Source of the DNA: Bispira polyomma
Lineage: Eukaryota
Assembly (NCBI GenBank): GCA_965649765.1
Contig: OZ287750.1
Location: 89,094,001 to 89,158,000, forward strand
DNA length: 64,000 bases
Direction of reading: 5' to 3'
The position numbers and the translations under genes were made by a program. Every line of letters begins with the position of its first letter. Position 1 is the first letter of the stretch. The notes under the pieces are model-generated. The model worked only from the letters and a program-made list of their open reading frames with translations, did no database searches and had not been told where the DNA came from. Shown one piece after another: positions 20,103-47,100 of this stretch.

Positions 20103-23100
20103 TTAGGACCCAAACTCCACAGTTGAGGAATCAATAGGCTTGAATTCAAATGACCCTCTTCCATCCATGCTTAGATAATACTGAAAAAAAAAGAGATATA
20201 TATAATTTTGATTGATGATTGTTCTTTTTAAGCCTCTATCTTTAAATTCTTCCCTGTGCTTTCACCTTACCATTCCAGTTACTCTCTCTAGTAATTAAGA
20301 AACCATTCGTCATTCAGGGATTTTTGCAAACACTGTGGATGTTTACCAAAACATAAAATTTAAATTCAGTATCTGAGGGATGAAAATATATTCAAAATAT
20401 TCAGACCAATCCTACAATTGTTGCACAAAGTACTGCAAGGCAAGAAGTTCATTATCTTAAAAAATATATGACTGACTTTCACATTTAATGTAACGGAACC
20501 CCCGCCCGAAGGTAAAACTAAATGGGCAACAACATTGAGATTTGGTAAAATGTATGGAATAAGTTGAAAAGTTTGAAGTATACCGAACCCAACCCTTTTA
20601 AGAAAATTTGTTTAAGACTCCAAAATTTTAAAAGTGTTACCATGACAACAGTTGTTGCCGGATACCCCCAAAATCTAATGAGCTGTAGATCCTCTTGTGA
20701 TAAACATATCCTGAAAATTTGGTGAAAATCCATGCATGGGTTTTAGCCTGTAGAACACCCACAAAGTTTAATACCCAAAGTCTTAGAAGCAGTGCCATGG
20801 CAACAGTTCTTCCCAGTTACCCCCCGAAACCTAATTGGTTCTACATCCTCTTGGGGTGAACATATCATAAAAATTTGGTGAAAATCCATGCATGGGTTTA
20901 GCCTGTGGAACACTCACAATGTTTATGCCCTATGCCGATGCTGGCCGGCCGGACGGCGGAAGGAATGACTATAACCCCAGCCTTTGTTGGCTGGGGTTTA
21001 TAAAACATATCTCAAGTAGCACATGTAAACAAATATGGTGATTTCTTGTTTTGTGTTAATAACATTTTTGTGAGACATAAATGCTGGATATATTTACCTG
21101 TTATCATCCATCATTATTTTGAGGTTTCTCAAGTAATGTGACCTACCAATATCTGTGTAACATATTCAGAAATACTGTGGACAAACTTTGAAGCAAATTT
21201 TTGGCCTGAACTAGCAGTGATAGTTGTTTACATATTTTTTGTCCGTTGTCTATTAAATATCAAAAATATACCTAAAGATCAATTATCCGAGCTATTTACC
21301 TCATGGTGTTTCCATAGTGATTTTCTGTGAGAGACTGTGAACAGCGTTATTCCAACCTGTAAGTACATAAAACATCATTGGCTGATTAAACTGTGTCGAG
21401 TAATCTGATTGGCTTGTAATGTTTGTGCTGAATTGGAGAGCAAAGTTTCCAAATCAATAACAGCAACATATCAGTATTGTAGATAGATGTAGGAGGGAAA
21501 TGTATAAGCAAATCGGCACAGATTATTTTGTGTACATGAAGAACATATTTGTATTTTAGGCTTTGAAAGTTCATTTAAAATTTGTCTATATTTAAGTGAA
21601 TTTTGAATTTGAATTGGGATATTTAACGTCCACTCTTGTACATGTTTAGGGTATATTGGGATGGGTAGTTGGAAACACTGGAGGAAACACTGCATACAGT
21701 TGATCAAAATTTTGCAATGAAACCAGCGGCCTACCGTAAGGAACTGCCACCTTTGCCACATAGGCATCAATGGGAGTCGAACTCACGCCGACCAGAGGTG
21801 AGAGACCAGTGATTGTGAAGCGCAATGCTTGCTAACCACTTGGCCACCGCGGCCCCTATATTTAAGTGAAACAATAGGTTTAATGTCTGTTATCATCCCT
21901 AATTAGGTTTCAGCTAACTACACAATTTACACCTTTAGCCTGGGGTGTTTCACTTTGTCCTCTATTTGGTACATTCCAGGGAGCATCCAAGCCATGCTGC
22001 CACATACGACACAGACTATAATAACACCCAATAGTGGCCATGTACACATGTAAGCACTAGAGCTGAGAGTTTCTTTAAATTCATTTGGGTTTTTTCGTTC
22101 GCGTTCAACAGCTTTGGACATATTACGACTGCCAGGTTTAGTGGTGGGAAAACAAGTACTGGAGCACTGTCAACCACCGACCTACGGCAAATACCTGCCA
22201 AATATTCTCACATTAAAGTGGAATCTGTGGGATTCAATCCCCAGAGGTGAGAGGCCAGTGATTTGAAAGCAGACACTTATAACCACTAGGACACCACAGC
22301 CCTTACTAGAGTGAAGAGAGACACCCATGATTGAAATACCTCGTCCAAGGGTACAATCTGCAGATCTGCAGCAAGGATTGATCCTAGGACCTACTAATCC
22401 AAAGTCAAACACTCTAACCACTAGGCCACAGAGACCCTTAAAATCTCAGAGGTCAGGGAGCTGTTGATCCACTGCAACCTGGCAATATTTGGCCTAGTTT
22501 CCAAAACTCTTTCCAACTCATTCAGACCTTTCATATGACGCCTTATTTAAAACAATTGTAATCAGACTTTTATTGTGCTTAATCTCCCCTTAACAAAGGG
22601 GACTCTAAGGCGCACAAACAAGTGGGTTAGGAGGAGATCTTGGAAACATTTTTTTAGGTGGGTCAAACCCACAACCAGAAGAATGGTCTGTAACTACAGA
22701 CTCTGCATGGCAACTATCATTTAGGCAAATTCCATGATAATAGGAGCTTCATACCATTAGACTCATAAGACAATTAACCATTAGACTCATTGACCATTAG
22801 ACTCTAAGACCACTGACTATTACACTCTAAGACCACTGATCATTAGACTCCAACACCATTAGACTCAAAGATCATTAAACTCCCAAGACCAGACTATAAG
22901 ACCACTGACTATTACACTCTAAGACCACTGATCATTAGACCCCAAAACCATTAGAGTCTAAGACCATTAGACTCTAAGATCATTGGACTCTAGGACCAGT
23001 GACCATTAGACTGTTAACAATCTAAGACAAGTGATTGTTGGCCTCTAAGTCCACTCACCTCCCGGCAGTGCTGGTACATAAATCCCTCCACATCCACACT

Positions 23101-26100
23101 CACGGCACTGGTACACTCATCAAGAATGGCAAACTGTGGCTTGTGGTAAAACAGTCGGGCCATCTTTAGACAAAAAGACACAAGTACTATATTACTACAC
23201 AGTTCTCAGTTTTTAGCGGTGATCAATCACATAATTGGCCTTTATTATTCCTAAGATCTTCAGAAACAACCAATGACAAAACAAATATTCCCATAACAGG
23301 ACTGTCAAACACCTTCGTTAAAGATATGCCGATAATTTATATAATTTAAACCCCAAAACTCAACATCTAGCTGCAATTCATAATTCATCAAATGTATGTC
23401 GCCTACTATTTTACCTCACCATCCAGTACACACTAACAACTCACCCCCACTTACCACCACTATCTGTTTCTCTTCCCCATTTACTGCCACCTTCGGCTTA
23501 TCACCCCCCACTTACCGCAACCCTCTGTTTCTTTCCCCCACTTACCACCACCCTCAGTTTCATGCTCCCACTTACCACCACCCTCAGTTTCATGCTCCCA
23601 CTTACCGCCATCCTCTGTTTCTCACCCATCACTTTCTGTAACCCTCTCATTATCACCCCCCACTTACCGCCACCCTCTGCTTAAAACCCCCACTTACCGC
23701 CACCCTCTGTTTCCTGGTCCCACTTACCCCCACTGTCTGTTTATCATGCTCCCACTCACTGCCACCTTCTGCTTATAACCCACACTTACCGCCACCCTCT
23801 GCTTATCATATCCCCACTCACCGCCACCCTCTGCTTATCATATCCCCACTCACCGCCACCCTCTGCTTATCATTCCCCCACTTACTGCAACCCTCTGTTT
23901 CTCACCCATCACTTACTGTAACCCTCTCATTATCATCCCCACTTACCGCCACCCTCTGTTTTTCACCACCCTCTGTTTATCACCCCCACTTACCGGAACC
24001 CTCTGTTTTTCACCCATCACTTACCGGAACCCTCTGCTTATCATGCCCCCACTTACCGCAACCCTCTTCTTACCACGCCCCCACTTACCGCCACCCTCTG
24101 TTTCTCTCCCCCACTTACCGCCACCCTCTGTTTTTCGCCCCCACTCAGTACATCCATCCAGTCCTGTACCGAGTCCCAGCCTCCCTCTCTATCCAGGATG
24201 TACCCTAGCTGTACTTTAGTCAAGATGTCCTCTAGGTCTCTGTCTGTGTAACCCTTCTTCAACTGCTCCGCCTTGTTGTCTGGGTAAATCACCTGGTCAC
24301 GCAGGGTGCCCAGTGTCATGTAAGGCCTCTGTGTGGGGACAAAAACAGGCCGTTACAGAAAGAAAACATATACCCAGTGTCATGTAAGGCCTCTGTGTGT
24401 GGACAAAAACAGGCCGTTACAGAAAGAAAACATATACCCAGTGTCATGTAAGGCCTCTGTGTGGGAACAAAAACAGCAAGAAAATATATACCAGTGTTAT
24501 GTGAGGCCTTTGTGTGGGGACCAAAACAGGCCGTTACAGAAAGAAAACATATACCCAATGTCATGTGAGGCCTCTGTGTGGGAACAAAAACAGCAAGAAA
24601 ACATATACCCAGTGTCATGTGAGGCCTCTGTGTGAGAACAAAAACAGCAAGAAAATATATACCAGTGTTATGTGAGGCCTTTGTGTGGGGACCAAAACAG
24701 GCTGTTACAACTAGAAAACATATACACTGTGTCATGTAAGGTCTCTGTGTGGGGGCATAAACAGGCTGTTACAACCAGAAAACATACACCTAGTGTCATG
24801 TAAGGCTGTTACAGCCAGAAAACATGTACCAAGTGCCATGTAAGGCCTCTGCGTGTCAGGCTGTTACATGTAGGGTGTGGAGATCCAAACATCAGTATAA
24901 GGCTGTTATATACAGAAAACATATACCAACTAATATCGCGATGACTATAGTGATAAAAGGTTTAAGAAAATATCAGGAAAAAGAAGTTTTAACTTGCTGT
25001 TACAGTCTATACGAACAACAATTTTTGAATTGAACACTAAGACGTGATTAGAACTGAATATTTTACCTGTGGAATGTAAAACAGGTGTTTGCCGTCAGGT
25101 TTTGTCAATGTCCCTCCAAACAGTGGCCAGAGCTGAAAGGAAGATTTTTTATGTATATATATAAATTCAGACTAATTTTGGGTGTTATGCTATTTATCAT
25201 CCATCCACTTATATCTCAAGCTTTACAAAATGGCAATGTCTGTTGTTGACATGATAACATTTAACAAAAAAAACAAAACATTTTAACATATAACAAACCA
25301 TCGGGGATTATTGACAAAAAAAGTCAGTTATAATCCCAAGCTTATCATTTAACACGTGTATTTTTGATATCAAGTAGGTCATGTGACAATATATTTACTG
25401 TGAAATGCCAAAAAAAAACCACTTTAATTGTGACCCAACAGTCTCTACCTACAGATACATTGTTTCAAGTAGTAACCCTCTTTTGTCAAAATGCACCTCA
25501 GGGGCAATAAAAGCTATTATCATGTACTCAAAACTGTGAGTGTCAAAGTTTATATGCCCCTAACCCTTAAGCTTGTTCCCATTCTGGAAATATCTGAATT
25601 AGAAGAAGTTCTGGACTATTTCAAACCAATTTCGGGTATTTGGCGACTTACCATTTATTATTATTATTATATATTTTTAACGCGCTTTATTGATGCTAGG
25701 CATCTTCTAAAGCGCAACAGCAGAATCAGTGATCCAATCGTAAAGTCCATGGGCATATATCAAAGTCATAAGTACCATCCATTAACTTACATTTCATTAT
25801 CCATTTATATGAATAAATAAACGTTTTCACCCTTTTTCTTCCTTACCTCTCCTAGTATTCTAAACAGTGAACTTTTACCACAGCCGTTGGGACCACAGAC
25901 TAGAACATTCATCCCTGATTTCACCTGGAACATACAGTCAGTACACCATACAACATCCTCTCATCAGATGAACAAATAAACAAGTACAATAGGCATTCTA
26001 TTGTGGGAACATGCTGGGATAGGAACATTTTCTGGATTCTAACATAACACAGCTAAAATTCACCATATACACTAAGGCTGCCAGTCAGGGGTGTAAACTG

Positions 26101-29100
26101 CATCGATTATCGCCCACGTGGACTCGATGCATCATTCGATGCATCGAAAATTCCATTTTAACCAAAAAAAGTGCCGATACATACCCAGAATCTACTGTTT
26201 TTTTATGTTTTCCCACAATATACCTTCAAATTTAGGTGTAAAACGAACATAAACATTTTCACGTACCTATTATTTATATTTGTTCTAGTCGACAATGTGC
26301 TTTAAGTGCATACTAAAATTCAGCTAATAGGGAGTACTATATAAATGATCGAGTCGCAAAGCCCGGCTCAATGTATCATTTTTCTTGTCTCACTCGATTA
26401 ATGCATCGATGCTAGCGCTAATTGTCACAGCCTTAATATACATATACACCAATTTTGTCCGTAATGTACTTTTTGCCCACAGAAAAATAGTTCCAACAGT
26501 GACATATAATATTGCACTAAATACAGTAGAATTCAGTAATCATTTTTACTTGTCTTGTTAAAATCGGAATAGCACATTCAAATAATTCTGTAACATTTTC
26601 TGATGATATGAAAAACTACACCCCAATAATACAGACAACTGACAACTGAAAAGAGCATACAGTTTAAGTAGCTTACCTCAAAGTTGAGCTCTTTCACAAG
26701 TATATCTCCATTTGGTGTCACAAGGGGCACTTTTTCAAACCTACAAAAACAAAAAAAGAAATTTATAGAACTGAAGCAACTGTTAGGACGAGGAGAGTAC
26801 ATTTTATGCAATAGAAATTCTATTTTCTGACGCTATATTATCTGTGATAATAACAGCGATATTATAGTGCCATTGTTATATTTACTCATTAAAATTTAAT
26901 CTATTGGGTGGAAGTTCTGTTATGCAGAACCAATTTTTATGGTACCTTCAGATTCAACTTAATTAAGTTCAACTGAAAAAAGGAAATTGTTACCAACCCA
27001 GTTTAAATAAAGCAAGAATCCATTCTTTATTACTTCTGCAAAGACAGTGATATTTTAACTAATGTCTGTTGGTTTGTATCTCACCAGGATTACAACAAAA
27101 ACTACTGAACAGATTGACATGAAATTTGGTGGAGGGATGGGACAAGGACCAATAAAAAATGTAAAAAGTTCTGGTGCGATATCTAAGGAGCATGGCTGAT
27201 CCAAAATTTTAAAAACGTTTTCTGTGGACTTTGAACTTGGCACTGGATGCTTTTCTGAATGCCCTTCCTAATGTTTTCTTCAATGTAATATTCTTTAGAG
27301 TCTTCAAATGACTAGATTATAGTGTTCGGACTTGGTCAATATGTATCAGGTCGCTTATTAATCGCAAAGACTTATGGCCAATCATCAACTCAAAGGTATT
27401 TTTTAACTGGGAGAATATTTTTCTATTCACAGCCATACAAATTGCAAACCACTGAAAGTATCATTCGTGGAGCGGTAAACTGCATAATTATGCAAACAAA
27501 TAAAAGTGAGCCCTAGCCATTAATACTGTGTATATAGGTGCAGGGTGCGGCCATGTTGAAAAGTGCCACCATGTTTGTAATAATATGTAAGGCTTTGTTG
27601 GATTAGTTGGAAGCAATTGACACGGACAAAATAAGGAGTGTCAGCTTAATACTATCACATACTGCCTGATATTGTCGCCATGTTGGAAAAAATATGAAAG
27701 GAAGGGCCTTCATGGATTGGTCAGAAGTAATCTACCTGGTCCAACTAATGGGTGTCAGATTAATATTTCTCACACTCTGCATCTGTGTCTTTTTTAAAAG
27801 ACAACTCTTGTTAATTTTTTACACTGATTATTGCAGTACTTTGACTATATACTACGTTGTACCTGATAAGCTTGTCCTGAAGGATCAACCTGCCTGACCC
27901 TGGTACAAGTTGGCTGCCATTTTCTGAAAATTTAAAAAACAAACACCACTAGACATCAGAATATACATTGGTGCACATATATATACATAGTCAGTCATTT
28001 AAAATTCTTATTACTATTATCATGCATTTTATCACTGCGCTTTATCGATGCTAGGCATCTTCTAAAGTGCAACAGCAGAATCCGTTAACCAATCGTACAG
28101 TCCATAAACATAACTAGGTCTAAAAGGAAGGATGTAGTGATGTTATATACCACATAAGTGTACCATTATCTGACAAGCAATTTGAAATTGAATTGGGATA
28201 TTTAATGTCCACTCTAGTACCTGTTTAGGTTATATTGGGATGTTGTAGTTGGAAACGCTGAAGGAAAAACTGCATAAGTAAGAATCTACCACCTTTATAT
28301 CTGACAAGCAAAAGATAATGAGAGGAAAAGGCTGAAAGAGAATGGCTGATTAATCTGTATTCGCTACAACATGACAAAAAGAGAATAATGATATTACTGT
28401 TTGATTAATCGTTTTTTTTTGACAAGTGTACTGTATTTTAAGCGAGTTGTTGCCATTGTCCTCTTATTGTTCACTGTTTTGAAAATTATCTAAGCTTACA
28501 ATCAACATAACAGTGCAAAAAACTATGTCAATTAGATTATTCGTTCAGCTTTACTTAAACTAATCGGATTAGTACATTGGCTATTTATTTTGATCCTCAA
28601 AAGAGGGTTATGTATGGTGTGCAGTAAACCTCTTTAAGTATTACGCTGTTAAATCTATTTTCATTTGATGTGAAAGGAAAATCTGTAGCTCCACAATAGT
28701 CTTGCTTTTTTAAAAAATCTACACCATTAAGTGAAAATTTAATTTTTTTCTGCTGATCCCTTGAGGTGCAACATTAAAAAGATTCAACTATAAATGCAAG
28801 ACAAACAACAATTACAGTGTCTGACTTGGTAATTTGGCAAAATGTGGCCCGAAAGATTTTAAAGGTCTTAATCCACGTTTAGAAATGGCGCACTTCTGGC
28901 CCAAATTTCATTGACATATTGCAAGTAAGGCAATATAGGGCAAGATAGACTTTTGAGCTGTGTTAAATTACAACGCCAAACACAAGTCTTAAATTAAAGC
29001 TTTACAGAAACAGAAGTTTAATATACAAATATATTAAGGAGACAAGTAAAACCTCTTGGGAGAGCAAGATTTTGCTTTGGATAATAGAGGGTTTACGACG

Positions 29101-32100
29101 CAGAAAAAAGCTTTTCTGTGTAACACAATAATAGTAAAAACAACTTTCGGAGAGTGGAAATAAATTGAATAATATTGAATCCAACATATATTTGGTTTCT
29201 ACTGACATACAGTCACTATCCAATTACCGAGAGTTGTAAAATTATTTAAAACTCAATTGGAAGAAATGACTGTCATGTTAATGTTATTATTTCTATAGCG
29301 CCACAACCGATGATCAGCACATCCCAGTTGATAAGCAGAAGAATAGTCTGCTAGGAGAAAAGGTTTGTGATCAGAGTTCAGTCATTACCAGCAGACGAAT
29401 GTTGAGGCAAAAAAGTGAGTTGATACAGATGTGTTTTTGAGCTTTTTCCTAAAAGCTGTAATCCTGATCTCAGTCTGAAGACTGACAGGGAGACTATTCC
29501 ACTAAGCAGGTACTGCAACTTTAAATGACCTCGAACCTGCAAGTTTAGGCATTTTTAAAATATATTTTGCTGACCTCCAGTGCTTTTCTCCGTGGTAACC
29601 ATAGTTCTCTCATATTGGCCTTTGTTTAAATCTTCCAACACCTTCATAAACTCAGTCACTCTGGCTGTGAACCTACAGAACAGAAAGTACACATACAGAG
29701 TGTCCATAAATAAAGAAGGAAGGGGGTGGGTGGGGGGTGGGGGGGGGCAAAGGTAATTCCAAGCAGCCTACTGTCATGATAAACACACACACCACATTCT
29801 GTGAGGACACCTTCATTACTTTTCCTGTAAATGAATAGAAACACCCACATAATATATATTTCAACACTTTAAAGACCTTGTCCATCGGCTAGCAGTAGAT
29901 GGCCATTTCTATTTGCCAGTGCCATGTCCGTCATGGTATAGTGCTCATAATATAAAAATAATAAATATATTTTTTTAAATTTGTGATGAAACAAAAAGTA
30001 TCATAAAAGTGGGTCAAAGTATTTTCTCTACAGCAATCGTATCCAGCCAATCATATCATCTCTCTGGCTTACTTTTCTCCTATATTTTGGTTGGCTAACA
30101 CACAAAATTGATCTCTTACCCAGCGAATCATATCATCTCTATCTATCACTTATTCTCCCCTGTATTTCTATTCACTGCCACACACCGAACAGCACTTACC
30201 CAGCCAATCGTGACATCTCTCGACCAGCCAGTACCACTCTGCCTATGGCTTCAGCCATCTTTACTAACATGCGTCCACTCTGGTAATAATCCTGCAAATT
30301 CATACAGTATTCTAGTATTACCCCTCTGTGTACATGCCGATACACAATTAAACCAAAACGTACAGTTCAAATACTAGCCAACTTAATTTAGACAAAAACT
30401 ATACTTACTACATAATTGCTACGTTAAATAGTTTGATTTTCTATTATGAGTTAATGGTGCCTTCTCTACAGGCAGTTTTATAATTGGTGTATTACTCTTT
30501 TCTTAAGACTCATGTTCGAACACAATTACTGCAAACTCTTTACAACTAGGAACCAGTATAAGTCAAATTTCTGTATAACTAGAAGCAATTTTGTGGTCTC
30601 CATATGCAAACTTCTAAAATTTAAGTAGAAGTTAGCCATAAGTAGAACCAACTAAATAACTAATTTGTCTGATAAAGTATGTATTCACTTTAATATTACA
30701 TGATATCAATACATGAAATTATATTTACAAATATATACATAAATTTATACTGAACTAATCAAAATACAGAAAATAATTTTCTAAGCTAAATTTCCTAGTT
30801 GTCTTTACACATGCATGCAAAGGGTCAGAATATTAGTATCTCACCATAAAACCTATTTATATTAAACCTGAAAAGTTTTGAAAACAAGTGACAAGCTAGC
30901 AATACTACTTTTTGGGGTTATATTTGAAACATATATTAACTAGGGTGAGTAGGCAAATAAATATAAACTAGTAAAATAGGTGAATTAAGTAAAATTACTT
31001 TAGCTTGTAACAGCTATATTAAATTATTAGTAATATGCTAGGACTAAAAAAGTAAAATGTCGAACAGTAGAACTTCTATTATCCAAACTTCTATTTTCCA
31101 AATATTTGATCTTATGAACACACTTTTATGCTCTTACATTTTCCTATTATTTTCCATTTGTATTTTCCATTTCAATGCGCTTTATTGATGTGAGGCAACA
31201 ACAAAATCAATTAACCAATCAAGAAGTCCAAAATACATACCCAAGATCATAAGGAAGGATGTGGGGTGCACTGGGAGTGAATCAAAGGGGGCAAGCAAGG
31301 TTGAAAAGATAGGTTTAAGCTTTTTCATGAACCCATTAAGAGTTTCTAGTTATCTAAGCTCAACTGTGAGATTATTCTAGAACATAGGGGCAGGCAATAA
31401 AGTATCTGTTCTGTTTTACAAACATTCTTTTATCAGAACAAACTTCTTGCTCTCAGAGCAACATTATCAGATAATAGAGGTTCTACTGTATTTGTTTTGG
31501 CTATTTTGGAAACAACATACTAACTAAGCTAAGGAAGCAAAATATATTAACTATAGTAGGCAAAATAGGCAAATTAGAACTTTGTCATATTAGCAATATT
31601 ATATGTTTAGAACTATCAAACCAAAAATAAACATGAAGATACTATTGTTAAATAAAAAAATATTTAAATTTATTAGACACCAGCTTATTATTAACATGAA
31701 AATCTACTAAACAAACATAAATATTCATAAAAAGTACCCTCATTGTTAGTGACAACACTCTGTATTTATAGATATATTTTGGAAAATAAATAGAAGTTAG
31801 GTCAACGGTCAAGGACAATCTTAAAAGAGGAGAATGATCCAAAAAGGCTCATTAAATGCCGGTAATCATTTTAAAATATGACCATGTGATACTACAACTG
31901 TTCATATATATTTTTTTCTTTACAACACTGCGTTATGTTATATATTTTTCAGAATTTATAACACAATTTGAATACATTTGGAAGATTGAGAAGTTTTTTT
32001 TAATTAAAAATGGGCCAATTTATGTGAATGTTTGGGTAACAGCAGTTTTGATAATAAGTAATCAATAGTAACAGATAGCAAGGACAGTTAACGCATATAT

Positions 32101-35100
32101 TCTGACTAAAGTGGCACCTCTATTTTCTGAACATGTTGGGAGAGAAAGATATTGTTTGGATAATAAAAGGTTCGTAAAATGGAAAAAACATTTTTGTAAA
32201 ACAATCAATTTAGGAGAGTGGAAATGAGTTCATCAAATCTCAAGGGCCTTACTAACTGCCGACTACATGACACTACATGGGACGACACATCACTGCACGA
32301 CAGTAATATACACACCAAGCACGACACAATATTACATATTACAAAAAAGTATAAAGATCAATACATCACCAAAGCCATTTGTGCACAAACAATATAGAAA
32401 CACCCCACGAAACACAGTGTCTATTTTTTAGAGATTTTTCCCAAGTAAAATTGCAGTGTCATGTGGTGTAGTGTTGTGTAAGGAGCAGTCTGTATAACCT
32501 CTATACATTTTCTTTTTTTCTACTTTATTGTAGTGTTGTGTTGTATCGTGTAGTTGGCGGCTGTAAGGCCATTTATATTCGGATAATAGAAGGTCGTACA
32601 ATAAGGTTCTTCCGTATTATCCTCAATTTTGCAAAAAAAAACCAAAAAACCAGGGGCCCTATTTACAAAGATTCTTATTCTCAGAATTGTAGTTATTCTT
32701 AGAATTTTTCTTACATTAAGAAATTTTTGAGAAAAATTCTAGAAACAGCAATTTTCAAATTTGTTTTATTCCCATTCTCAGATTTTTTTTAAAGAAAAAA
32801 TTGGAATAAGGCTAGAATCTAGGAATGGTACATAAATTGGCAACTTTGTGGTGAATAATTTTTTTGAAAAATCTAATATTAAGAAATCAACAAATGTGAA
32901 CATTTTTATTCTTAGAATTTTTTCTCAACAAATTCTTAGATTAAGAACAATGCTAAGAATAAGAATCTTTTTGAATATGGCCCCTTATCTGTTGAGTGAG
33001 CACTAGACCTGCCTTTGGTCAATGTATTCAAGTAAGACTTAAAACCCTATAAAACTGAACATCTGCAGATAGCAAGAATTTATTGAGGTACTAGGAAGTT
33101 TATAAAGAGGCATTTTAGAGAACAACCAAATATGAAAGAAGAAGGCCACTCAGTAGAGCGCATACCCCGGCTAAAGCCCTGCAGTGCCAACAATTAAAGG
33201 AAAGATTCCCTGAGGATTACCCACATATGCTTAAACTTTTATATTCAATTTCCACTTTCCTTCCCTCAAACCACATGTTAATTAGGGTCAGTAGTTTTTT
33301 TCTCATCCTGGGGTGGTATTCACAAATGGACTTAGCCAAGTCTTAGGCTTAACTCTCTATACTTTTGTGCTAGATTTAAGCCTGAGACTTGGCTAAGTCC
33401 CTGCGTAAATACAGGCCCTGGTGCCAAACATTCATATATATATATGTATAGTGCACGTTTCACTTTAAATCAGATACTCCTTTTTTGTTCTCAAGAGCCC
33501 AAATGATAAATATTGTCGATATTAATGAACTAATAAATTTACTCACTACTGCACTACTGTAAAAAGTTTTTAAAAAATCCGAAAATTTGGGTTATAAGCT
33601 CACCTCCATTTTTTGACTTTGGGACATGTTATCAAAGCGTGTGCTGGTGAGATCGAGGAATGGTCGGCTCACAACAGTAAAACCACAGACCGTGGCTAAA
33701 TCTAAGAGACAAACAAAGAAATTCAACATAACCCACACCAAAGAATGAAAAAAAATATCTGTCTTATAAAGTTTTGCATTAATTGAGGAATATGTTGACT
33801 ATAATCAGTTGTTCTGCTGTAAATAGTGAAAGACCAAAACTTTCTAATTAAAAGCACATCGATAATGAAGGAAATTCCACGGGGTAACAGGTTTGCATAA
33901 ATAGCTAGAGTCACTAAAACACACACCATATATACTCCAGGCATTGTGCATAATTTTATAAAAACCCAGAGAATTCACCAGTACTGAAACATTGAAAAAT
34001 GCTGAACACTGAAAGAAAGTAAAACAACAATATGGGGTTGGGTATGGGGCTTGTCCACTGATTTTCCATGGACAACGAACCTCCAATAAGATGGAGATGT
34101 TGACTGCTACTCAATGGACATTATGATTGTGACAGTATGTTATAAATCAAAGATGAAGTTAAGAAATTCAGACAGGAAAGTTTGCAGTTAATGAAGCAAG
34201 TTGTTATCAAGCAGAAGGGTCAATGAATGAGTTGAATGACACATGCAAAATCCCGAAAATGAAGTTATAAACACCTTCAGATACACAGGATTTATACCAA
34301 GATTGGCAATTAGAAAAACCTTTTAAACAATATCAGGCACAACTTTGGGCAGTAAAAAATTTGGGTATGGCAATCTGTCAACGAAGCCATGCATATAGCC
34401 CATCCTTAAACACTGTAATATTGCAATTGTAAAAATCTTCTCTTAAGCACGGTGAGATTATGAAGCCACCTGGGTTCTTATAAGTGATGTTTGAAACAAA
34501 AATTTTCCTTCCAAAGGGGGATATCATTGTAGCCCCCAAAGTGTAGCTTTTTGTAGATACAAACGACTTTGAAATTACTATAAAATCAGCCAGCATATAT
34601 ATATATATATATTTGTTCTCTCCAAAGAAAGTCAAGTTTAGACTTCATTCAAATAAACTCCCCCTTTATAAGGAAATCACCTATACTCCATGCCAAATTC
34701 TAGTAGTTGATCTATTATTAACCAAACTTCTGTAATTATCAATGTTCAATGGACAATTTTATGGACAGTTTTATTTTCCCAAATTTTAATTTTCCAATTG
34801 ATTTATTCTAAAATGCCTCTTCTATTTTAGAACCTTCTATTATAACTGAGATATTCCACTGTATATGTAGACAGACTTAACTTCACCCTACCCAAAGATA
34901 TAGGCTACATTACATTTGAGAGTCTACTAAATCCTGATTTATATTAGGAAAATTGTTATTAATAAAGAGGAAATAGGAAGATACAAATCAAACTCACACA
35001 AGACAAACCACCCTCAGGAATCTGAACAAAAATGGTCACTCGCAGTTGAATTTTCCCACATAACCTTTAAGTGACCGACCTACTGAGCATCACCAAGGAG

Positions 35101-38100
35101 GCAATATAATCGGGCGTTATTTTTATATATAAGAATTTTCTTCACATACACCATGGCTATAGAAGCTATTATTGCAATATATTAATTATATAAATATAAA
35201 ATTATATATTTTAACATATTTGACTGCATCTAATAACTCAATGGTTGGCGATCATTTGTGTTACAAAATGTCTTGCAGTAAACTAACTTGTATAAAGAAA
35301 GACTATCACAAACTGGCTAAAATTGCAATTGATGAAACGCTGAATCATTCACTGGTTAAATATTTGTTTGAATGACAAATGTGTTATGCGCAGTGTCAAA
35401 TAAATAATTTCTACTTTTTTTTCCCACTCAAATACACAGACTTGCAATAGCCAGGGGTCACTATGTTACATTAGTAAAGTGGATAACCTCTCACTAAATA
35501 TACTTCAGGGGACACTTTTGAACAAATAAAAGCAAATTGGTGGGAATCGTAATGGAATTTTCTTCAGTTCTCAACTGTAGTTTTCTCCCAGTCGTCAAAG
35601 GGTTAATACCAAAATCGTTAATAGGTTTCATATGGTAGCAACTCATGGGTGACCGTCCTTTTAGAGTGATCGTCCTTTGAGAGTGGTCGCTTGTAGGAGT
35701 TTAGTTGTAGTTTGTGAAAGACCTCCACGTGCAAATCAATAGAAACCCCTAAACATCTTCCAAAACCATAGAAAGAATAGTGCATGTTAATTTAATAAAA
35801 GCGTTCTAATAGGGATGACACAGTACTTGAAAGTTTTCCAATGAGATTTATCTACATGTACTTGAAGAAAAAAACATTCAGATTATGGAAGACCACCATA
35901 CGATACATTGAGTTTAACCAACTAAACATGCCAAAAACTGGAATAGGATTAAAATCAAACCAAAACAGACATAGAATTGGTTGCTCATATTGATTAATAG
36001 TGATAAAACAGGGTGAAAAAAATGGCATTAAAATTTTCTTATATTTTAAAATACAGCACATCACAATCATTTGTAGATCTGAATTTACATATTGATATTG
36101 ATTACATATTTATTACACCCAAATGTTCAAAATTAGACATTCCTCCTAATTTAGTTTATGTTCTCCAGCCAAATATACACTGATCTTGAGATCTTCAGAG
36201 TACAATGTCATCCATATAGTTAGTGCTTGGTTAAGTAAGGAACAATTGAATACAAAGAAACCGAAAAAGATTTAGATAAGGACAGGAAATACACTGATTA
36301 AATACCCCAGTAGGACCCCTTTTAGCCAAACTTTTATTATCCGAATAATTATTTTGATTTTCAATTTTAATCTTTAAAGTATACATTATTTCCTATAATT
36401 AAATTTTTTTTAATACTAAATACCATTCTAGTTTATGAAGCTTCTATTATCTGAACCAAAAAAACAATGGTTGCTCACCCAGTATGTTGGGATATAGATG
36501 TTCTACTTTGTAAGAAGCAGTAACTACAAGAAGATGGTAATTTGCTGATACATTAAGATCACATCTGTCCATCATATTTGGGGAAGAGATAGCAACTACC
36601 TCAGTAGGAATAGTTCTGTGATACAGTCATTCACTGAAAATAAGAAATGTGGCCCCCCTAATAAAGGCTTTCCTAATTGTTAAAGATATGGAGGTCAGTG
36701 TACTGCATTGGTTAGGACATACAGGGGACCCAAATTGTACAGACAGACATAAACGTCCAGAAATGTACTTCATGTGGGCCTTCCCAACCAGTTACCCCTA
36801 CTGGCATTACCCTAGATGTATAATGTATGGCCCTCCTATGTATTCGATGATACCCCTCTAATACCCCTTCTATACCACAGGGACAAAAATTCTCCCTCTA
36901 CTTTTTACCAAAAATAAGAGGGAACTTCAACTTTTTACCCTAAATAGGAATAGACATATATTAGTTGTCTTGCAAGATAGTTAGATGCATTCAGTTAATT
37001 GCATTCGGTTTTAGCTGGCTTGCAGTCACATTGCAAAGACCAAATGCAAAGGTTGAAGAAACTAGGGCTGAAGCACTCTCAACCACTGACCTATGGCAAG
37101 TACCTGACAAACGTTACCACATGAAGGAACAATCGGGATTCAAACCCACATTGGTGAGAGGCCAGTGATTGTAAAGCTACTAATGCTTCTAGCCACTAGG
37201 CCACTGTGGCTGCCATCTTGCTTAACCTGCAATATTAATGGTTTAAAGTCTTATTATTATTGGTTATTTTTTTATTTCCTTCTCGACTTAATTTGAGCAG
37301 AATTACCGAAGGTACAAATATCAGAGTGAGAGTTCTAGGTTAACAAAAATGTATGGAAAATAAGAATGTGGCCCTAAGGCAAGGGGCAGAAAAGCATTTC
37401 CATAAAATAAGAGCGGCCCCTCATATATTATTGCATGTTCCACCTCCTTATTTTCAGTGAATCATTGTAGACTGAATATTGATACAATGAACAATCAAGG
37501 CTATCATTGGCATTTAGATTTAGGTTGGTGGGTGAGTTTAGAGGCTGTAGAGACAGAAAGAAACCGATTGGCCAATGGTTGCCATGGTAGAAACATATAT
37601 ATATATTTGATCATGTGACCTCCATTCTGCCGGTTTGAGTCAAGGCATTCATCCTGCTGTCATCAGTATCAAAGAACGGCCGGCTGACCACAAAGTAACC
37701 CATCATGAAAGAACAGTCTGAAAATACCAGCCAAAAGGCGGCTAGTTGTGGAGTGGTGAAAACGCCAGCCAAGACTAAGACCTTTTGGAAATACGGCCCC
37801 GGTTTGTAACCTATATATGATGTCAGTTCCTCGATACTTAACTCGAAGTGAGATATCAAAATTTGAGTTTGGTTTTTAGCAAATCTTTGGAACACTATAT
37901 ACCATACCATGTCAGTCATAGCAATGATATTAAATTGTACTATGGAATTTTAACAGGCCTTTTAGATGCCAGCCATCTGGAAAAGTGGCAACATCAAAAA
38001 TCAATAAACTATTAATCATTTTCCTAATATACAGGAAAACTGTTCACTGTCAGTAGGCAATAGCATGCGCACATCTTGTCCAACTTTTAAAGACTGCTAT

Positions 38101-41100
38101 CCTCCCAAGGAACATAATTATGGTCTTACTAAGAACCTTTGTTTGTGCAAATAACCATTCATTTTAACAAAGATTCTAAAGATAGAGTTGAACGTCAAGC
38201 TGTATAAATCACACTATTAAAATGAATTCATAATGTATTTTATATCATAGGAGTTAAAATCATTTAACAGCACTTTTATGTTTCACCAAAAATCCGTAAA
38301 CGCTTGTTATGTGACGTTTAGACCAGAAATTGGCATGGACCAGATTTTGCACATTGACTATATATTTCATGAAATACTGTTTAATCAGTTGTTAGTTTTT
38401 TAAAACCAACAAACAGGTAAAAATCTTCAAAACCAGTTACTAGTTTTAATATCAATGTGTAAGTTTTGCACCTATACATGGAAGTTTCTACTTTTAGGCC
38501 AGTATTTGACACAACGTTCAGCACAGCATAGTGCTTTATTTTGGTCAGTTTTGTTAAGTCAACTAGAAATATTAAAGGATCTATGAACTTTGGTTTCTTT
38601 ATTTTGATATATATTTTTCCAATTTACTGTAACTAGTTAAGTAAAATATGATTAGATGGGTAACATGGGCCATGAAAGCTAGAGATAGGAGTTACGTCTT
38701 GTGCCGGAGTGATACAAGGTCATGACCAAATACACATACGGTACTTACACTTAGCAATGACGTTGTCAACCAGACCCATAGAGAAACGGAAGAAGATGAA
38801 GTTTCTGAGATGGTCAACCTAAAACAAAACAATTAAAAGAACCAGAATTAAAGGAATTTTAATTTAGTCATATCATGATGGCCAGATTTAATGGTGGAAG
38901 AAAACCAGTGCTGAAGCACTATGTAAACCAAACAACCTATGGCAAGTACTTGACAAACTTTACCACACGAAGGAATAAACAGGATTCGAACCCACATTGG
39001 TGAGAGGCCAGTGATTGTGAAGCAGACGCTTCTACACTCATGCTTACAGTCATCATATTACAGTCTTCTGACTAACTACTGACTTAGGTTCATTCCCAGC
39101 CTTGATCACCTGGGTACTGGCATGGCTGTCACTACTTGAAATGGTAGTCTTCTGTCATTGGGTCATATCCCCCAGTGACAGGTTAAAGAACCTTGGGGAC
39201 ATTAGTTAATGGTGTCACCCTCAAGTATCCGTCTTCAGTTTGGTGGATGGCAGTTACTAGCACTATTTGGCTGTATCTGGGCAGTCAAGAAAATATTATT
39301 TAGCACTATAAATACCAGGTAAAAGTAGATAAAGGTGCCGAGTACAATACACTCATCCACTAATCAAAAAACGTACCAGTTTTTCGAATGCCGCTGTTAT
39401 AATTGTCTTCTCTTTCCTGTTTCCCTGGTAAAAGGCGATTTCCTCACAGTTTGTGATGAGCCTGGAGTTGACGTAGCGATATTCTCCTTCCAGTTTCTGT
39501 TCAGTTACTGTCAGTGCCCCGATTGGCCTCCTTAATCTGTGGGTCACATGACCAAAACATACACGTTAAAGTTTTTATGATAACATAAACTCTACTTAAC
39601 AATGTAAATTTTAATTAGAAATCTAGCAATGGAACATTAATACTATGTTACTTAACATGTAACTCCACTTATCAGAGTTCTACTTTAAGGGGTTTGATTG
39701 CACGTATGTTTAACACGTATTTAGAATTAGTCATTTCAAGAGACTCTTCCTTTGGGATAGTGTAAACAACTAAAAAAACAGTTTTTGATAACAAAAACAA
39801 AGCATCTCTAAAGTTGAAACAATAATGATGTTATTAAGAGCACAATGTCTAAAACTGTTTGAAAAGTTGACATATAAACAAAATCATTCCTGCAGGTCGA
39901 AAATAAGCTCGGAATCAATATATCAAGCACTGTTTCTGAGATAACGCAAATTTCGAAAAAAAAAGATACAGAAATTCATAAAAATCGAAAATTTAAGGTA
40001 AAAGTAAAATTGGCAAAACATGAGGTTAACAGTAAGTCTTAGTAAAATACAGCAGAACCTCCATGATTTCAACATATTGGGAGAGACTAAGATTTTGTTT
40101 GAATAATAGAAGGTTTATCAAATAGAAGTCATTTTAGAGGAAACTAATAGGAAAATAGAAATTTGGAAGGATGAAAGGGTGGTATTAAAATCAAACACAT
40201 ATTCAAATATTAGAAGTTTGGATAATAGAGGTTCTAAAGTATTGCTTAACGTTGGATTGTGTTCTGCACTATGGTACCTACTATTTATACACAAATATAC
40301 ATTGTGACTTAATTAATAGGCTAAAATTATAAGCATTTTACCTGGTTAGAATTAATCCAGACACGAACAAATAGGACAACATAAAGAATGGACCCTGAAA
40401 AGAGAAAACAAACCCGAAAGTGAGATCCCAATCTTCATTACAGTTCACATAATTAGCTAAATGGTTTGACAAAAGGCAAACTGAAGGGAGAAGTAAAGAG
40501 TCTTAAAGGTGTAAATAGAAGTCTTTTAAGTCTTACAGGTGTGGATAGAAGTAGTTTGTGTACTGTACTTAAAACCTATCGTGTTTTGTTTGTTTACTTT
40601 TAGGTTTAATAAAAATTTCAACAATAACGTACGATATTACAGTGGGCAGTTTATTAGCATTGCAAAGCAGAACAGCATAGTTGATAACAATTTCTGAACT
40701 GTAACGTCGGCAACTATAGTGTCGGTTAATTTTCCTACATACATGTAACAGCCAAGATTCAAAGTTTCAAACCCATCCTGATAAAACTTATCTCAGTATA
40801 TGGAATATAAACATATACCAAATCATACTTCACATTGGAAGCTAGTGACAAAAGCACCACTAATTTAAATGGTTACAAGTATATACTTTGACATACATAA
40901 GCCTTCATATAGCCTACAGTTAAGTATGGGCTTAAGTGTGCAGTGCACTTCAACAATACAGATACCAAATACTACATGTAATTTTACTTTTTATGAACAC
41001 ACAAACAAATTATAAACCATTTAATTTTTTCTGCTAATTACTTATATTACATTACTTGTACTGAAACATTAAATTTACATAAGAGTGTGTAAAAGTTAAT

Positions 41101-44100
41101 ATCAACAATGTAGACAAGAATCATAAGATAATGTAATTATAAATAAAATAGATAATAGTGTGATTGTGTAATACCTATTAACAATCAAAAAATGAAAAAT
41201 GTTCTTTTTTTTTAATTTACAACTAAAATCAATTTAATTCCATGAACAATAAATTCTCAGTGAGTCATATTAGACTAGTATTACAGTATTCACTAAACAT
41301 ATTGTTCTCACCTGAGCTCCAATGGCACTGGTTAGTCTGGTTGCATAGATGGCGATATCTAACAGTGGCTGTAAATCACAAAAGTAGACAAGTTTCACAC
41401 TACCTCATTTAATTTTTGTATAGACCTTTTTACAGCCAAGAGGTCACTGAGTGTGTGTTGTGGTGCATTATGTGTAAACCTCGCCCCCTTATTGCACATA
41501 TATTGGTCAATTGTACTGCAATTAATCTAAATGTGCATCTTTTCAACACTTAATATCCCTTCATAGTCAGAAGTCATTTAAAATCTAATATCCCTTTATA
41601 GTTAGAAGTCATTTAAAATCTAAGTGTTGATAAATGACTTACACATATTTTTTTTATCACCTGAAAAAAGGCAACAATTAAACCTATAACAATGTGAATA
41701 GGCTCTATTGCTTCATAATTTTTGTAAACAAATATTGGGTAATTCTGAGGGGGTCAATCTTGTGATATGGACAGAATATTCCCACCACTTGGTGACACAA
41801 TGTCAAAGGTGACACCATGTTTTGTTATTACTGCTGTCCTACAGATTTGTAAAAATATCTACCACTGGTATCTGGTGTCGATAAAGGTTTACCAGTATGC
41901 TGCACTTCATTTAGGTAAAAATCGTAGGGACATTGATGAATGGAGACATACTCAAGCCTCTGTGTTTAGTAAGGGGAATGACAGTTACTGGTGCTGGGTG
42001 GCTGTACTTGAGTCAAGTAAAGGAAAGGTTAATTTGTCCTTTGAATACCAGACAAATGGAGAGTATAAATTTGATTACAAATTCAATACAACAAACATCA
42101 CGAGATATTTTACCTTGCTTAAGTTAGAGTACAGCTCTCCTACACTTGAACACAACTTTTCCACATCTTGAGTCAGAAGTTGATCCGGGTTGGCGATCCG
42201 GTTGTCAAGGTTACTCATCTTGTAATAGGTAAATGTTCTGTAACACGGAATCACAAATTATAACCGATATCAAAGGAGACTATGTATTCACCAGGTTCAG
42301 TTAGTTTGATACCAGGTTACCAGGATTATACTAAAAAAACTGACCCGATTAACATGAAATTTGGTGAACGGACAGGAGAGAAGGTAAAAATAAGAGTCAA
42401 TTCAATTTGAAAATAGAGGACATGGATCTGCTTAGAAGAGCAGATGCACAAAGAATTGTCTGTCTTTTTGCCACTGTGGCACTTTGGTAGAGGTATGCAC
42501 TCTACTGAGTGTCCTTCTTATTTTTTCTCACTTTGAACACGTTTTTAATTTGGGTTAATAAATATTCCCCTATTATTATACATTGTACAAGATAACTATG
42601 CTCTTATTCTCTCTTTAACTTCAAGAGAGTAAAGAGACTTTCTGTTTTCTCTGAAAACCCACCAAGAGGGCTAAATCTAGAACTTTCTCAATCGCTGCCC
42701 CTATGTTAATGGCATAGTCTCCCAGTTAAGCTTAGATCACCAGAAACACTTTTCTAGGTTTTAGAACGCTATTTGGCCCACATGACCTCACACTATTTTT
42801 GAAAAAGTCACCATAGCAACCATCTTGTTGGTGAGATTTGGTGAAAAACATGCATCATACATTGTATCAACAGGATAAAGCCAAAATAAAACAGATTTAT
42901 TCTTTATCCCCTATCGGCCAAATTTCTGTAAAAAGGAAAATCACTTACTTTAGAACAAAGATATTGTTCATAAAAGGGTTGCCTACAATGTAACCATTTA
43001 CTTGTTTCTATGAAGATTCACTTTGACGTAAACAATGTCTGTCAATACTGATACATATTATAATGTATACATACGAGATACAATTTTCTGGAGTAAACTC
43101 CAACATTAAGATTAACATAACGGAGCAATTCTACTTTACCAGTACAAGATTTTAACAAGACTTTGCGTGAGTGATAAAATAAGGTAATTTAGTGTAATTT
43201 TGGGGGGGTTTGTAATGAATCGTCAAGATTTAAATTTACATGTAAACAACAAAATCTTGCATAAAACAAATCTCTTACCGGTAAAGTAGAAACTATCCAA
43301 CACAAACTCCATAGATACTTTGAAGTTAAACATTCACCTGGGATACTGTGTTTAGTTTGACGTGAACACTTAAGTGTACCTGTACACATGTACCTGACTA
43401 TACTGTTGTCTATACTATAACAAGTGTAAAAACTTACATCAGACACTATTTATACCGGTGTTCACTTACATGAGATACTGTTCACTATAACAAGTATAAA
43501 CACTTACATCACACACTATTCATATCGGTGTTCACTTACATGAGATACTGTTCATAATAATAAGTGGAAACACTTACATCACACACAATTCATATCGGTG
43601 TTCACTTACATGAGACACTGTTCACTATAACAAGTGGAAACACTTACATGACACACTGTTCACACAAATGTTTACTTACGTGAGATACTGCTCGTAGAGA
43701 TGCGTACTAAGTCGTGTTCGGAAGCGTAGCTTGAGTTCATTTAACCCATACTGGAAGTAGAATGTGGTTTATTGGTAAAACATTTACATGTACATAGATA
43801 TGTACAAGTTCAACTCTCTTTGTACAAACACGTTCTTATTTTGTCAAAATAACTTTACTATCATCAACTTTTAAATATGATCACAAGACAAAACTGCTTA
43901 AATTTAAATTTGGCAAACTTTAAAACCTTTACCCCATAATAACAGTGAACACTGAAAAAAAAAACTCCTCAATATCAATTTCCAACATTGATAATAAGTT
44001 TAAACTCTTTATAATAATAAAATAAATTCTTACGTATAGTGCTCACTGTGTGTGACTCTGGATGAAAACTATAGTTAACATAAAGTCATATGATAGTCAT

Positions 44101-47100
44101 ATACATACCTTTAAGATATTGTTCACCAGTGACATCTGCAAATTAAACACAACATTCATTGACTTTCAATTTGTAAGCAACATAGAAAACACTGAAAGAA
44201 AGGACAAGTGAATAGTCACAACAGATCATTCTGTATAACAAGAGTTGTCTTAAAAAAAGACATAGGCACCTATGATAAAATACACACTGTTGATATGGCC
44301 ACTATGAGTTGGCACCCCTACAAAAAATCATCTGACACCCCCTCAGCTTGGACGGTTGATTGTTTCCAACCAAACCAAAAAGGCCTTACATATTTTTTCT
44401 AAGATGGCGGCGCCCTTTTCAGAATGAAAACAATATCAGGTTGTGCCTGATAAAAACTCAAATACTCTTCAAAGTATGGTGTGTTGTTGAAGACCATAAT
44501 GATGTTTGTCTTTGACATATCGTGGGCTGTTGTTTTTTGATAGAAAAGCTAGATATACTTAAGAAGTGATTATTCTGACGTTACTTTCTCAAGTTAGGCG
44601 TCTGATTAACAAATTTAACCAAATTAGCTTGACAAAAACTTGCCATCTTCGACTTTTGTTGCTTGACCCTTGGTCGTCTGAACTACATTCTATTATTCTG
44701 TGGCATATTCCAGATCTATGGTTCATTTTTTACATTGCAAAACTTTCTAGTGTTAACTACCGACTTACAGCAGGCATGGCACAGACAAGTCTGAGGAGAT
44801 GCTTCTTAAACAGGGTTGAACTTCTCCCAATGATAGCACTGCAAGTATAAATACAAAATACTGACATGACCATGTAATTAACATTACTACTGTATAGTGT
44901 TACTAAGGGCTGGGGTGGCCTAGAGGTTAAAGGCACCTGCTTCACAATCACTGGCCATTCACTAGTCACCAAGTGGGTTCGAATCCTGTACATTCCTCCA
45001 TGTGGGAGTGTTTGGTCAGTTACTTGCTGGAGGTTACTGGTTTACCGTGGCTTTAGCACTGATTTCTTCCACTATTGAATATGGCTGTCGGAATATGACC
45101 TGAGCCGTTGAAAGTGACGTAAAACCCAACTAAAAAAATACTAAAGTACATAGTGTTATCACTAATTTATCCAAGATAATAAACGTGTCCACCTTTTCTT
45201 AACCTTTCTTGAAATTTTAATATTAACTGCTTACAGGGTATATGTTTCAGTATTGGTTGACTTAAAATTTTACCATGTTGTTTTACTGTATTAAAGAGTT
45301 TGAGTGGAATCTCAAAATACCAGAAGAAATAACTTGACTTAAGCAAAGTGGGTATACTGCCAACCTTCTTCCTAGGGTGGAAAAAATGAAAATGTAATAA
45401 GCAAGAATTATTATGTTTGGAAAAAAACATGAAAATTGAATCTTTTGGGGTCATAAAGGTGACCTTTGAACAATTCCTAAACTAACAATCTAAACAGAAT
45501 GTCATGAACATGTGGTCAGTTGTATGCAGAAAGAAGTTCAGTTTTGTCTTCAATGTATTTTGAAAAGAAGATTGCTAAAACAAATTGTGTTTTAAAATTG
45601 ACACAATTTTTTTTTTGAAGGCAATAAAGGAATTGGTTTAAAAAAATGTGCATATATATATTTATACTGCAGTCCAGTTAGTTTAAAATTCCTTTTCTGT
45701 GGAACCAAATTTGTTGGCTCCCAAAATATGCATATATTATTAAACAATCTCTGTTGCCATATTCTGTCTCATCACTCAACAACTTACCACACAAAGTGGT
45801 ATTTTATGGTATATATTACCTTTCAATAGAGGTTCCATTTTCAATCATCCAGACATCACAAAATGTTCTTGCTATTAAAGCTGCAGCGACCACCACAAGA
45901 TACCAGACCTAAAATAACAATTAATACCAAATATCATGTAAAATCTCCTGTGACTTTAAATGGTCGAGAACCTGCTAATTTTGGTAAGGATTCCAAGGTG
46001 GAGACGCAGTTTCTTCTGATGAGATTGCAGAGTCATATCATGGATGATAAGTAGGATGACGGTTCAATATGAATAGTCTTAAAAGTGAGGCCACTTACTC
46101 TAAATTGAACTAGAATTGGGCCAACTCAACAGATAGGTTAAAAAGATAGGTTTTATGCTTTTGCCTAAAACCAATAAGTGTGGCAACGGATGTGAGGTCG
46201 ACTGGGAGACTATTCCATAACTGTGGAGCTGCAGTGGAGAACGCTCTGAATCCCGCCTTCCTGATATGTCTGACCGAAGAGACAGAGTCTGTTGCCTCTC
46301 TTGCAGTTACTAAAGGAGAGAAGGGAGGAGAGAAGGGAGGCAAGGTAGGGGGGCTGTTGAGCGACTGCAGCCTTAAAAGTAGCAACGTGAATCTTGAACA
46401 AAATGCGAGAATGAATGGGCAGCCAGTGTAATTTTTTTAAAATAAGGAGTAACGTCTGTACGACAACCCAGGCGAAAAATGACCCTACATAGGTAGTTTT
46501 GGATGGACTGGAGCTTTTTAATATGTGACTTGTTTGCTCCGTACAAGAGAGAGTTGCAGTATTCGAGGCGGCTACTCACAAGGGCATTTGCCATAGTTAT
46601 CGCTGTGTCCATGGACAGGTAGTTTCTGATGAAGCAGAAACTTTTTTCAAGATTTCAGCGATGGCCGTCATTTTGTTTTTTGAAACAAGGCTAAAGTCAA
46701 TACCAAGCAATGTACTGACCTAATACACCTTCATACATAATTTGGTAATTCTATCTGCAATAGTTCTCCTTGAAATAAGCGAAGACAGTTTTCACGATTT
46801 TGCTGATGGCGAAATTAAATGTTTATTTAAACGGCCCAAAATCAATACCAAGCAAGCTACTGACAAAATACACCTCCGTATAAAATTTGGTGATAATATG
46901 GGTAATACTGTTTCTTTAAATGAACGGAAACCACAGCTACAGGACGGAGAACAATGGACGCTGACATGCACAAAAATGATATTTCATCCCTCAGGGTGGA
47001 CATAACAGACCTCAGTTGGGGAGCCAGCAAAGTGCCAACAGAATTCTGCAAGGTTTGAAACATGGTTTTTGAATATACAATTCTGCGAAGGTTGCTCTTG

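Follow-up and report, generated by a model that had tools for sequence, protein, structure and literature searches.

Tandem copies of an exon in an annelid ABCD3 gene, predicted to be mutually exclusive and to differ at the coenzyme A site

Tandem duplicated exons that substitute for one another by mutually exclusive splicing are well known; they are enriched in membrane transport proteins and have evolved convergently in orthologous genes (PMC9741552, PMC8373072). The peroxisomal transporter ABCD3 (PMP70) has so far been treated as a single-form importer, and the structures of the human protein (PDB 8Z0F, 8Z9X, 9NGJ) contain one sequence for transmembrane helix 5 (TM5). In contrast, the ABCD3 gene described here, located in a stretch of 64,000 nucleotides from Bispira polyomma (contig OZ287750.1, positions 89,094,001 to 89,158,000; hereafter the window), encodes two. 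The human protein is an ortholog that aligns without gaps over residues 323–355, with K322, Y323, G329, Y357, and R373 conserved. The two annelid exons resemble the described substitutions in their equal length, which is not a multiple of three, in the swap within one domain, and in their old age (PMC9741552, PMC8373072).

A pair of homologous exons in the annelid ABCD3 gene

The pair lies on the reverse strand between two constitutive exons, exon 12 (38749..38818, 70 nt), which ends with K322 and the first base of the Tyr323 codon, and exon 14 (30200..30291, 92 nt), which encodes TM6 with Tyr357 and Arg373 and is present here as a single copy. The Tyr323 codon thus straddles the exon 12/13 junction. 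Both the upstream copy, 13a (37620..37717), and the downstream copy, 13b (33604..33701), are 98 nt long and run from phase 1 to phase 0; 13b is nearer to the ancestral exon. All four exons have AG/GT ends, and 13a and 13b are free of stops. The copies share 13 of 33 residues and 49 of 98 nucleotides, and the codons differ at 6 of the 13 shared residues. The coordinates, the lengths of 70, 98, 98, and 92 nt, the phases, the splice ends, the residue identity, and the absence of stops all agree with a preliminary description of this DNA. That description had also claimed that inclusion of both copies or neither shifts the frame, and our frame checks confirmed this: a single copy, 13a or 13b, leaves the frame open through exon 14, while double inclusion meets a stop two codons into 13b and direct joining of exon 12 to exon 14 creates a TGA at the junction.

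The similarity of the copies is unlikely to be accidental. A tblastn comparison over the 64-kb window, which contains no N, matched 13a and 13b with E 4e-5, and the next match had E 0.78. Stop-free 98-nt exons with AG..GT ends and an in-register Y..G..PF pattern occurred twice in the exon 12–14 interval and never in 300 shuffles. No third copy of exon 13 was found in the window or in the genome, and no additional duplicated exon was found in the gene. A homolog search with the 102-aa open reading frame (ORF) containing 13a gave no matches, a result made weakly informative by the short length. In its equal lengths and phases, its splice sites, its frame logic, and its recurrence in a second annelid (below), the pair fits tandem duplicated mutually exclusive exons.

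The whole gene occupies 20103..56326 on the reverse strand, with the first coding exon starting from 56326. Between 47383 and the stop at 20103, 21 exons were mapped; they join into a continuous 608-codon frame with canonical GT-AG introns, in a map that leaves out one small N-terminal exon. Exon 11 matches PF06472 (ABC_membrane_2) with E 2.8e-19, and the Walker A and signature exons of the ABC ATPase were mapped, indicating a half transporter. The 1.035-Gb genome holds this single ABCD3 locus, plus one ABCD1/2-like and one ABCD4-like locus on other contigs. In the PDB, 13b matches ABCD3 chains only. The gene is 78% identical to Capitella ABCD3, for which the match to ABCD3 (E 2e-138) exceeds that to ABCD1 (E 2e-42). 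The earlier assignment to ABCD3 is therefore upheld by the PDB matches, the Capitella comparison, and the domain and genome searches; peroxisomal location and acyl-CoA transport are ascribed to it by orthology. A protein tree built without exon 13 places the gene in a clade with Capitella and clitellates (97/96), apart from molluscs, and thus points to an annelid source.

The same arrangement was found in Capitella teleta (GCA_000328365.1), where two 98-nt copies of exon 13 lie between the same flanking exons. The downstream copy (L008:5786-5883), 20/33 identical to 13b, is the only form present in the gene model; the upstream copy (L008:5517-5614) is intact and omitted from it. The frame logic is that of the window, since skipping leads to a stop and double inclusion to a stop within the next exon. 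The 171-nt intron behind the Capitella upstream copy is itself stop-free in the frame of the upstream exon. The upstream copies of the two species are 11/33 identical, with synonymous codon changes at 8 of the 11 shared residues, and the downstream copies share the donor GTGAGC. Orthologous exons of the two annelids are about 55% identical in nucleotides and the introns are alike only at chance level; even so, neither upstream exon has acquired a stop or an indel or has lost a splice site. This bears out the earlier proposal of an old duplication under purifying selection, and the search of related genomes for loss or disruption of 13a found an intact counterpart in Capitella.

The other animals compared carry a single copy. 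Exactly one exon 13 was found in each of the leech Helobdella, three gutless-worm-type contigs, a limpet, a bryozoan, a starfish, and one further animal contig; in clitellates the single exon is of the ancestral type. No second copy was found at a fish ABCD3 locus. The closest ortholog of 13b (23/33) lies on a marine metagenome contig (L001:432-529, ENA ERZ23499014), and the metagenome contigs L001–L003 hold the close 13b ortholog with only about 430 nt of upstream sequence, a stretch too short to reveal a second copy. In Watersipora, the intron right before exon 13 contains a short, incomplete copy of the 3' end of exon 12 (L029:11242-11289).

Residues exchanged by the two exons

Capitella and human ABCD3 align without gaps at an offset of +66, so that exon 13 corresponds to human residues 323–355; the human PDB chains served for numbering only. 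In a predicted structure of the Capitella downstream-type protein (monomer, pTM 0.56, used for secondary structure only), exon 13 comprises the luminal half of TM5 and the luminal loop and extends into the first turns of the long TM6 helix. The location in TM5 and the luminal loop given in the preliminary description is thus correct.

In phytanoyl-CoA structures, Tyr330 stacks on or hydrogen-bonds to the adenine, Lys322 contacts the phosphates, and Thr326 touches the CoA ribose or its 3'-phosphate, while TM3, TM4, and TM6 accommodate the acyl tail; substrate-stimulated ATPase activity is lost or lowered by Y323A and Y330A (PMC11369193, PMC12154719). The adenine is held jointly by Glu111', Tyr330, and Tyr357 (PMC12154719). 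Position 326 is Thr in 163 of 165 distinct homologous segments, and position 330 is Tyr in 109, Trp in 33, and Phe in 22 of them. In the upstream copies, the residue at position 326 is bulky and hydrophobic (Phe in the window, codon 37709-37707 on the reverse strand; Leu in Capitella), and Tyr330 is kept (codon 37697-37695), together with Gly329, the VV-S/C-R/Q-PF helix end, and the RM end. The downstream copies of both annelids keep Thr326 (33693-33691 in 13b) and have Phe330 (33681-33679). Each predicted isoform thus retains one ancestral polar contact and loses the other. The earlier claim that the isoforms differ in substrate-pocket residues stands as far as the CoA head-group contacts at 326 and 330 are concerned; since the known contacts of exon 13 are to the ribose and adenine and the acyl tail lies elsewhere, a change in acyl-chain preference is not a direct prediction.

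We propose that exon 13 of ABCD3 was duplicated in tandem in a polychaete-annelid lineage, giving rise to two mutually exclusive exons, of which the spliceosome would pick 13a or 13b. Transcripts with both or neither stop early in frame and would presumably be cleared by nonsense-mediated decay. Inclusion of 13b would yield the default importer. Inclusion of 13a would yield a variant importer, probably confined to certain tissues or stages, with a different luminal half of TM5 and a different luminal loop; in it, Thr326, the contact to the CoA ribose, would give way to a bulky hydrophobic residue, and Tyr330 would be retained. The likeliest effect would be on how the CoA head group is bound or released at the luminal gate (affinity, ATPase coupling, or turnover) rather than on acyl-chain selection. 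We consider a mutually exclusive pair, with 13b as default and 13a as a variant, to be likely. That 13a is spliced is very likely; for a difference in CoA handling between the isoforms, deduced from the human structures, the odds are somewhat below even.

Splicing, competing explanations, and the remainder of the gene

Exclusivity could arise from splice-site competition together with decay of frameshifted products. The introns between the copies, 3918 nt in the window and 171 nt in Capitella, are too long for simple steric exclusion, and a duplex scan found no competing RNA pairing common to both. Inverted repeats in the introns were considered as an exclusion device and set aside; they resemble mobile-element ends, and none occur in Capitella. 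An 11-mer common to the upstream introns was dropped, as about one is expected by chance at such lengths. The 7-nt motif ATCAAAT (37605..37611, reverse strand) occupies positions +9 to +15 after the 13a donor and recurs without change at this distance from the upstream donor of Capitella (P about 0.002, or about 0.02 after allowing for nine flank pairs); it is a tentative candidate for a splicing element. The preliminary description had regarded 13a as probably the minor or regulated form on account of its weak donor. Among 21 scored donors of the gene, the 13a donor matches U1 least well (5/9); however, the Capitella upstream donor matches at 7/9, so the weakness is not conserved and the designation depends on other, indirect hints. 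The weak donor here, the absence of the form from fetched proteins, and its faster evolution make 13a the presumable minor form.

Several points weigh against the proposed pair of functional isoforms. The case for use of 13a comes from DNA sequence, and the upstream-type exon appears in none of about 375 fetched proteins, besides its omission from the Capitella model. The upstream copies resemble each other no more than they resemble the downstream copies, and they evolve 3–4 times faster. In one structure, the contact of Thr326 is attributed to its main chain (PMC11369193), and Phe and Trp are common at position 330 in homologs, so the functional effects could be small. On the other side, same-length annotated isoform pairs from other tandem exons of ABCD3, described below, indicate that ABCD3 can accommodate such swaps and has evolved them repeatedly. 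An assembly artefact, a haplotype duplication, or a fragment of a second gene is effectively refuted, and nothing was found in its favor: contigs from three DNA runs are identical to 33373-37108 and 37150-38895, an exact match that speaks for a genuine pair, the copies are only 50% identical, the genome has one ABCD3 locus and no other match to 13a, and a second species has the pair. DNA reads over 33000-38900 (5,901 letters) contained no variants in the exons and no splice joints. A never-used or decaying pseudoexon would account for the weakest donor in the gene, the long branch of 13a, and the loss of a nearly invariant Thr, and it would agree with an exon known from DNA; we nevertheless regard it as improbable, since 13a has stayed intact in two species through extensive divergence of exons and introns, with conserved residues kept through codon changes. 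There is also a small chance that 13a is mainly dampening, either as a poison exon that lowers ABCD3 mRNA when included with 13b, as the stop upon double inclusion in both species would allow, or as an inactive, dimer-poisoning subunit, as the loss of Thr326 would allow. A poison exon needs no in-frame residue conservation, yet such conservation is seen at Gly329, the helix end, Tyr330, and the RM end.

Alternatively, a genuine pair, used in splicing by both annelids, may have originated twice, in the window lineage and in Capitella. The five annelid-type exons (both copies of the window, both of Capitella, and that of L001) cluster in a single clade (97/97) that excludes the ancestral type, and the best exon tree joins upstream with upstream (80/46, on long branches) and downstream with downstream (89/72). 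Approximately unbiased (AU) tests do not reject pairing within species (p 0.33 and 0.12), which leaves room for two origins, as do the long branches of the upstream exons and the mere 11 of 33 residues that they have in common. The tree from the rest of the protein likewise does not recover a clade of window and Capitella, and clitellates have a single ancestral-type exon; this clade is, however, not rejected (p-AU 0.154). The sorting of copies by position in the best tree, their same order, the same partition of Thr326 and Tyr330, and the common 7-mer behind the upstream donor argue for a single duplication, which we hold to be reasonably likely, whereas two origins appear unlikely, though not strongly so.

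The remainder of the gene shows further peculiarities. Exon 11 (39377-39536) lacks an intron that is present in exon 11 of Capitella, leech, limpet, and bryozoan, and Capitella has no intron separating exons 11 and 12; these differences read as lineage-specific losses adjoining the duplicated exon. Both ends of the 210-nt exon at 24119-24328 have been amplified into minisatellites (24309-24848 and 23443-24145). Upstream, there are about five extra copies of the acceptor and first codons in a 54–64-nt unit; downstream, about eight extra copies of the exon end and GTAAG donor in a 30-nt unit. These form arrays of putative decoy splice sites. On the opposite strand, the first intron contains a 102-aa ORF (55215-55523) with a PHD-finger match below the cut-off (E 9e-4), which is probably derived from a mobile element.

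Duplicated exons in ABCD3 and in other transporters

Our analysis also revealed exon pairs elsewhere in ABCD3. In three starfish, same-length annotated isoforms swap the equivalent of exon 14, which encodes TM6 (XP_033636379/XP_033636380 and XP_022087262/XP_022087263; pairs P0334/P0143, P0335/P0336, and P0149/P0337). The genomic DNA of Asterias rubens contains the 92-nt tandem pair with canonical splice sites (L030:16249-16340 and 16737-16828), and the pair is conserved between Asterias and Acanthaster. The two forms differ at positions 362, 368, 369, and 374 (the equivalents of Arg362, Ser368/Gln369, and Ile374), of which Ser368 and Ile374 are substrate contacts (PMC12154719). In teleosts, frogs, caecilians, and lizards, annotated X1/X2 models swap a 70-nt exon that starts right after Glu111 (P0157/P0159, P0130/P0131, and P0181/P0183), and Pempheris DNA carries the tandem pair with canonical splice sites (L031:6135-6204 and 7899-7968). 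Database annotation of this kind generally rests on RNA reads. One dog model (P0206) has an alternative-type exon after Glu111, suggesting that mammals may keep the vertebrate pair. The corresponding exon 5 of the window (44769..44838, reverse strand, 70 nt) is single, as is exon 14.

Like the annelid pair, the starfish and vertebrate pairs provide same-length isoforms from tandem homologous exons of the same gene. Different exons were duplicated in each case, which indicates separate origins. Since Glu111', Tyr330, and Tyr357 jointly hold the adenine, the three duplications border one CoA-adenine site. It is tempting to speculate that exon duplication has repeatedly targeted ABCD3 and that the annelid, starfish, and vertebrate switches generate tissue-specific importers or mixed dimers differing in how CoA is held and released, but we put this forward tentatively. 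Two natural CoA-contacting helices in one gene, together with three duplications, would mark a site tuned repeatedly by evolution. The pairs offer natural variants for structure–function work on CoA binding and release, and, if the proposal is true, such variants, including one accessible in zebrafish and Xenopus, could probe CoA handling and substrate range in ABCD transporters.

The novelty of the ABCD3 case is limited to the literature searched, in which we found no description of ABCD3/PMP70 exon pairs and beyond which most subscription papers lie; within that scope, the earlier remark that no such description is known holds. ABCD3 is absent from the text of PMC9741552 and PMC8373072 and from the searched supplements of PMC9741552. 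The phenomenon itself, including its convergence in transporters, is well established. New here are the Capitella counterpart, an exon overlooked by annotation, and the convergence in three lineages.

The survey of tandem duplicated exons found that ligand-binding residues are usually conserved (PMC9741552); in contrast, a ligand-contact residue is changed non-conservatively in the annelid pair. The closest parallel is provided by ABCC9, Drosophila MRP, and C. elegans mrp-1, in which unrelated exon duplications arose in three lineages, two of them in one structural region (PMC9741552, Fig. 5). Like ABCD3, these are ABC transporters with separate exon duplications in three lineages. They differ in being plasma-membrane ABCC full transporters with up to eight alternative exons, whereas ABCD3 is a peroxisomal half transporter with two such exons, and in competing RNA structure, of which none was found for the annelid pair. 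As a half transporter, ABCD3 could also form mixed 13a/13b dimers. With ABCD3, the convergent exon duplication already known for ion channels and the ABCC/MRP transporters extends to peroxisomal lipid import.

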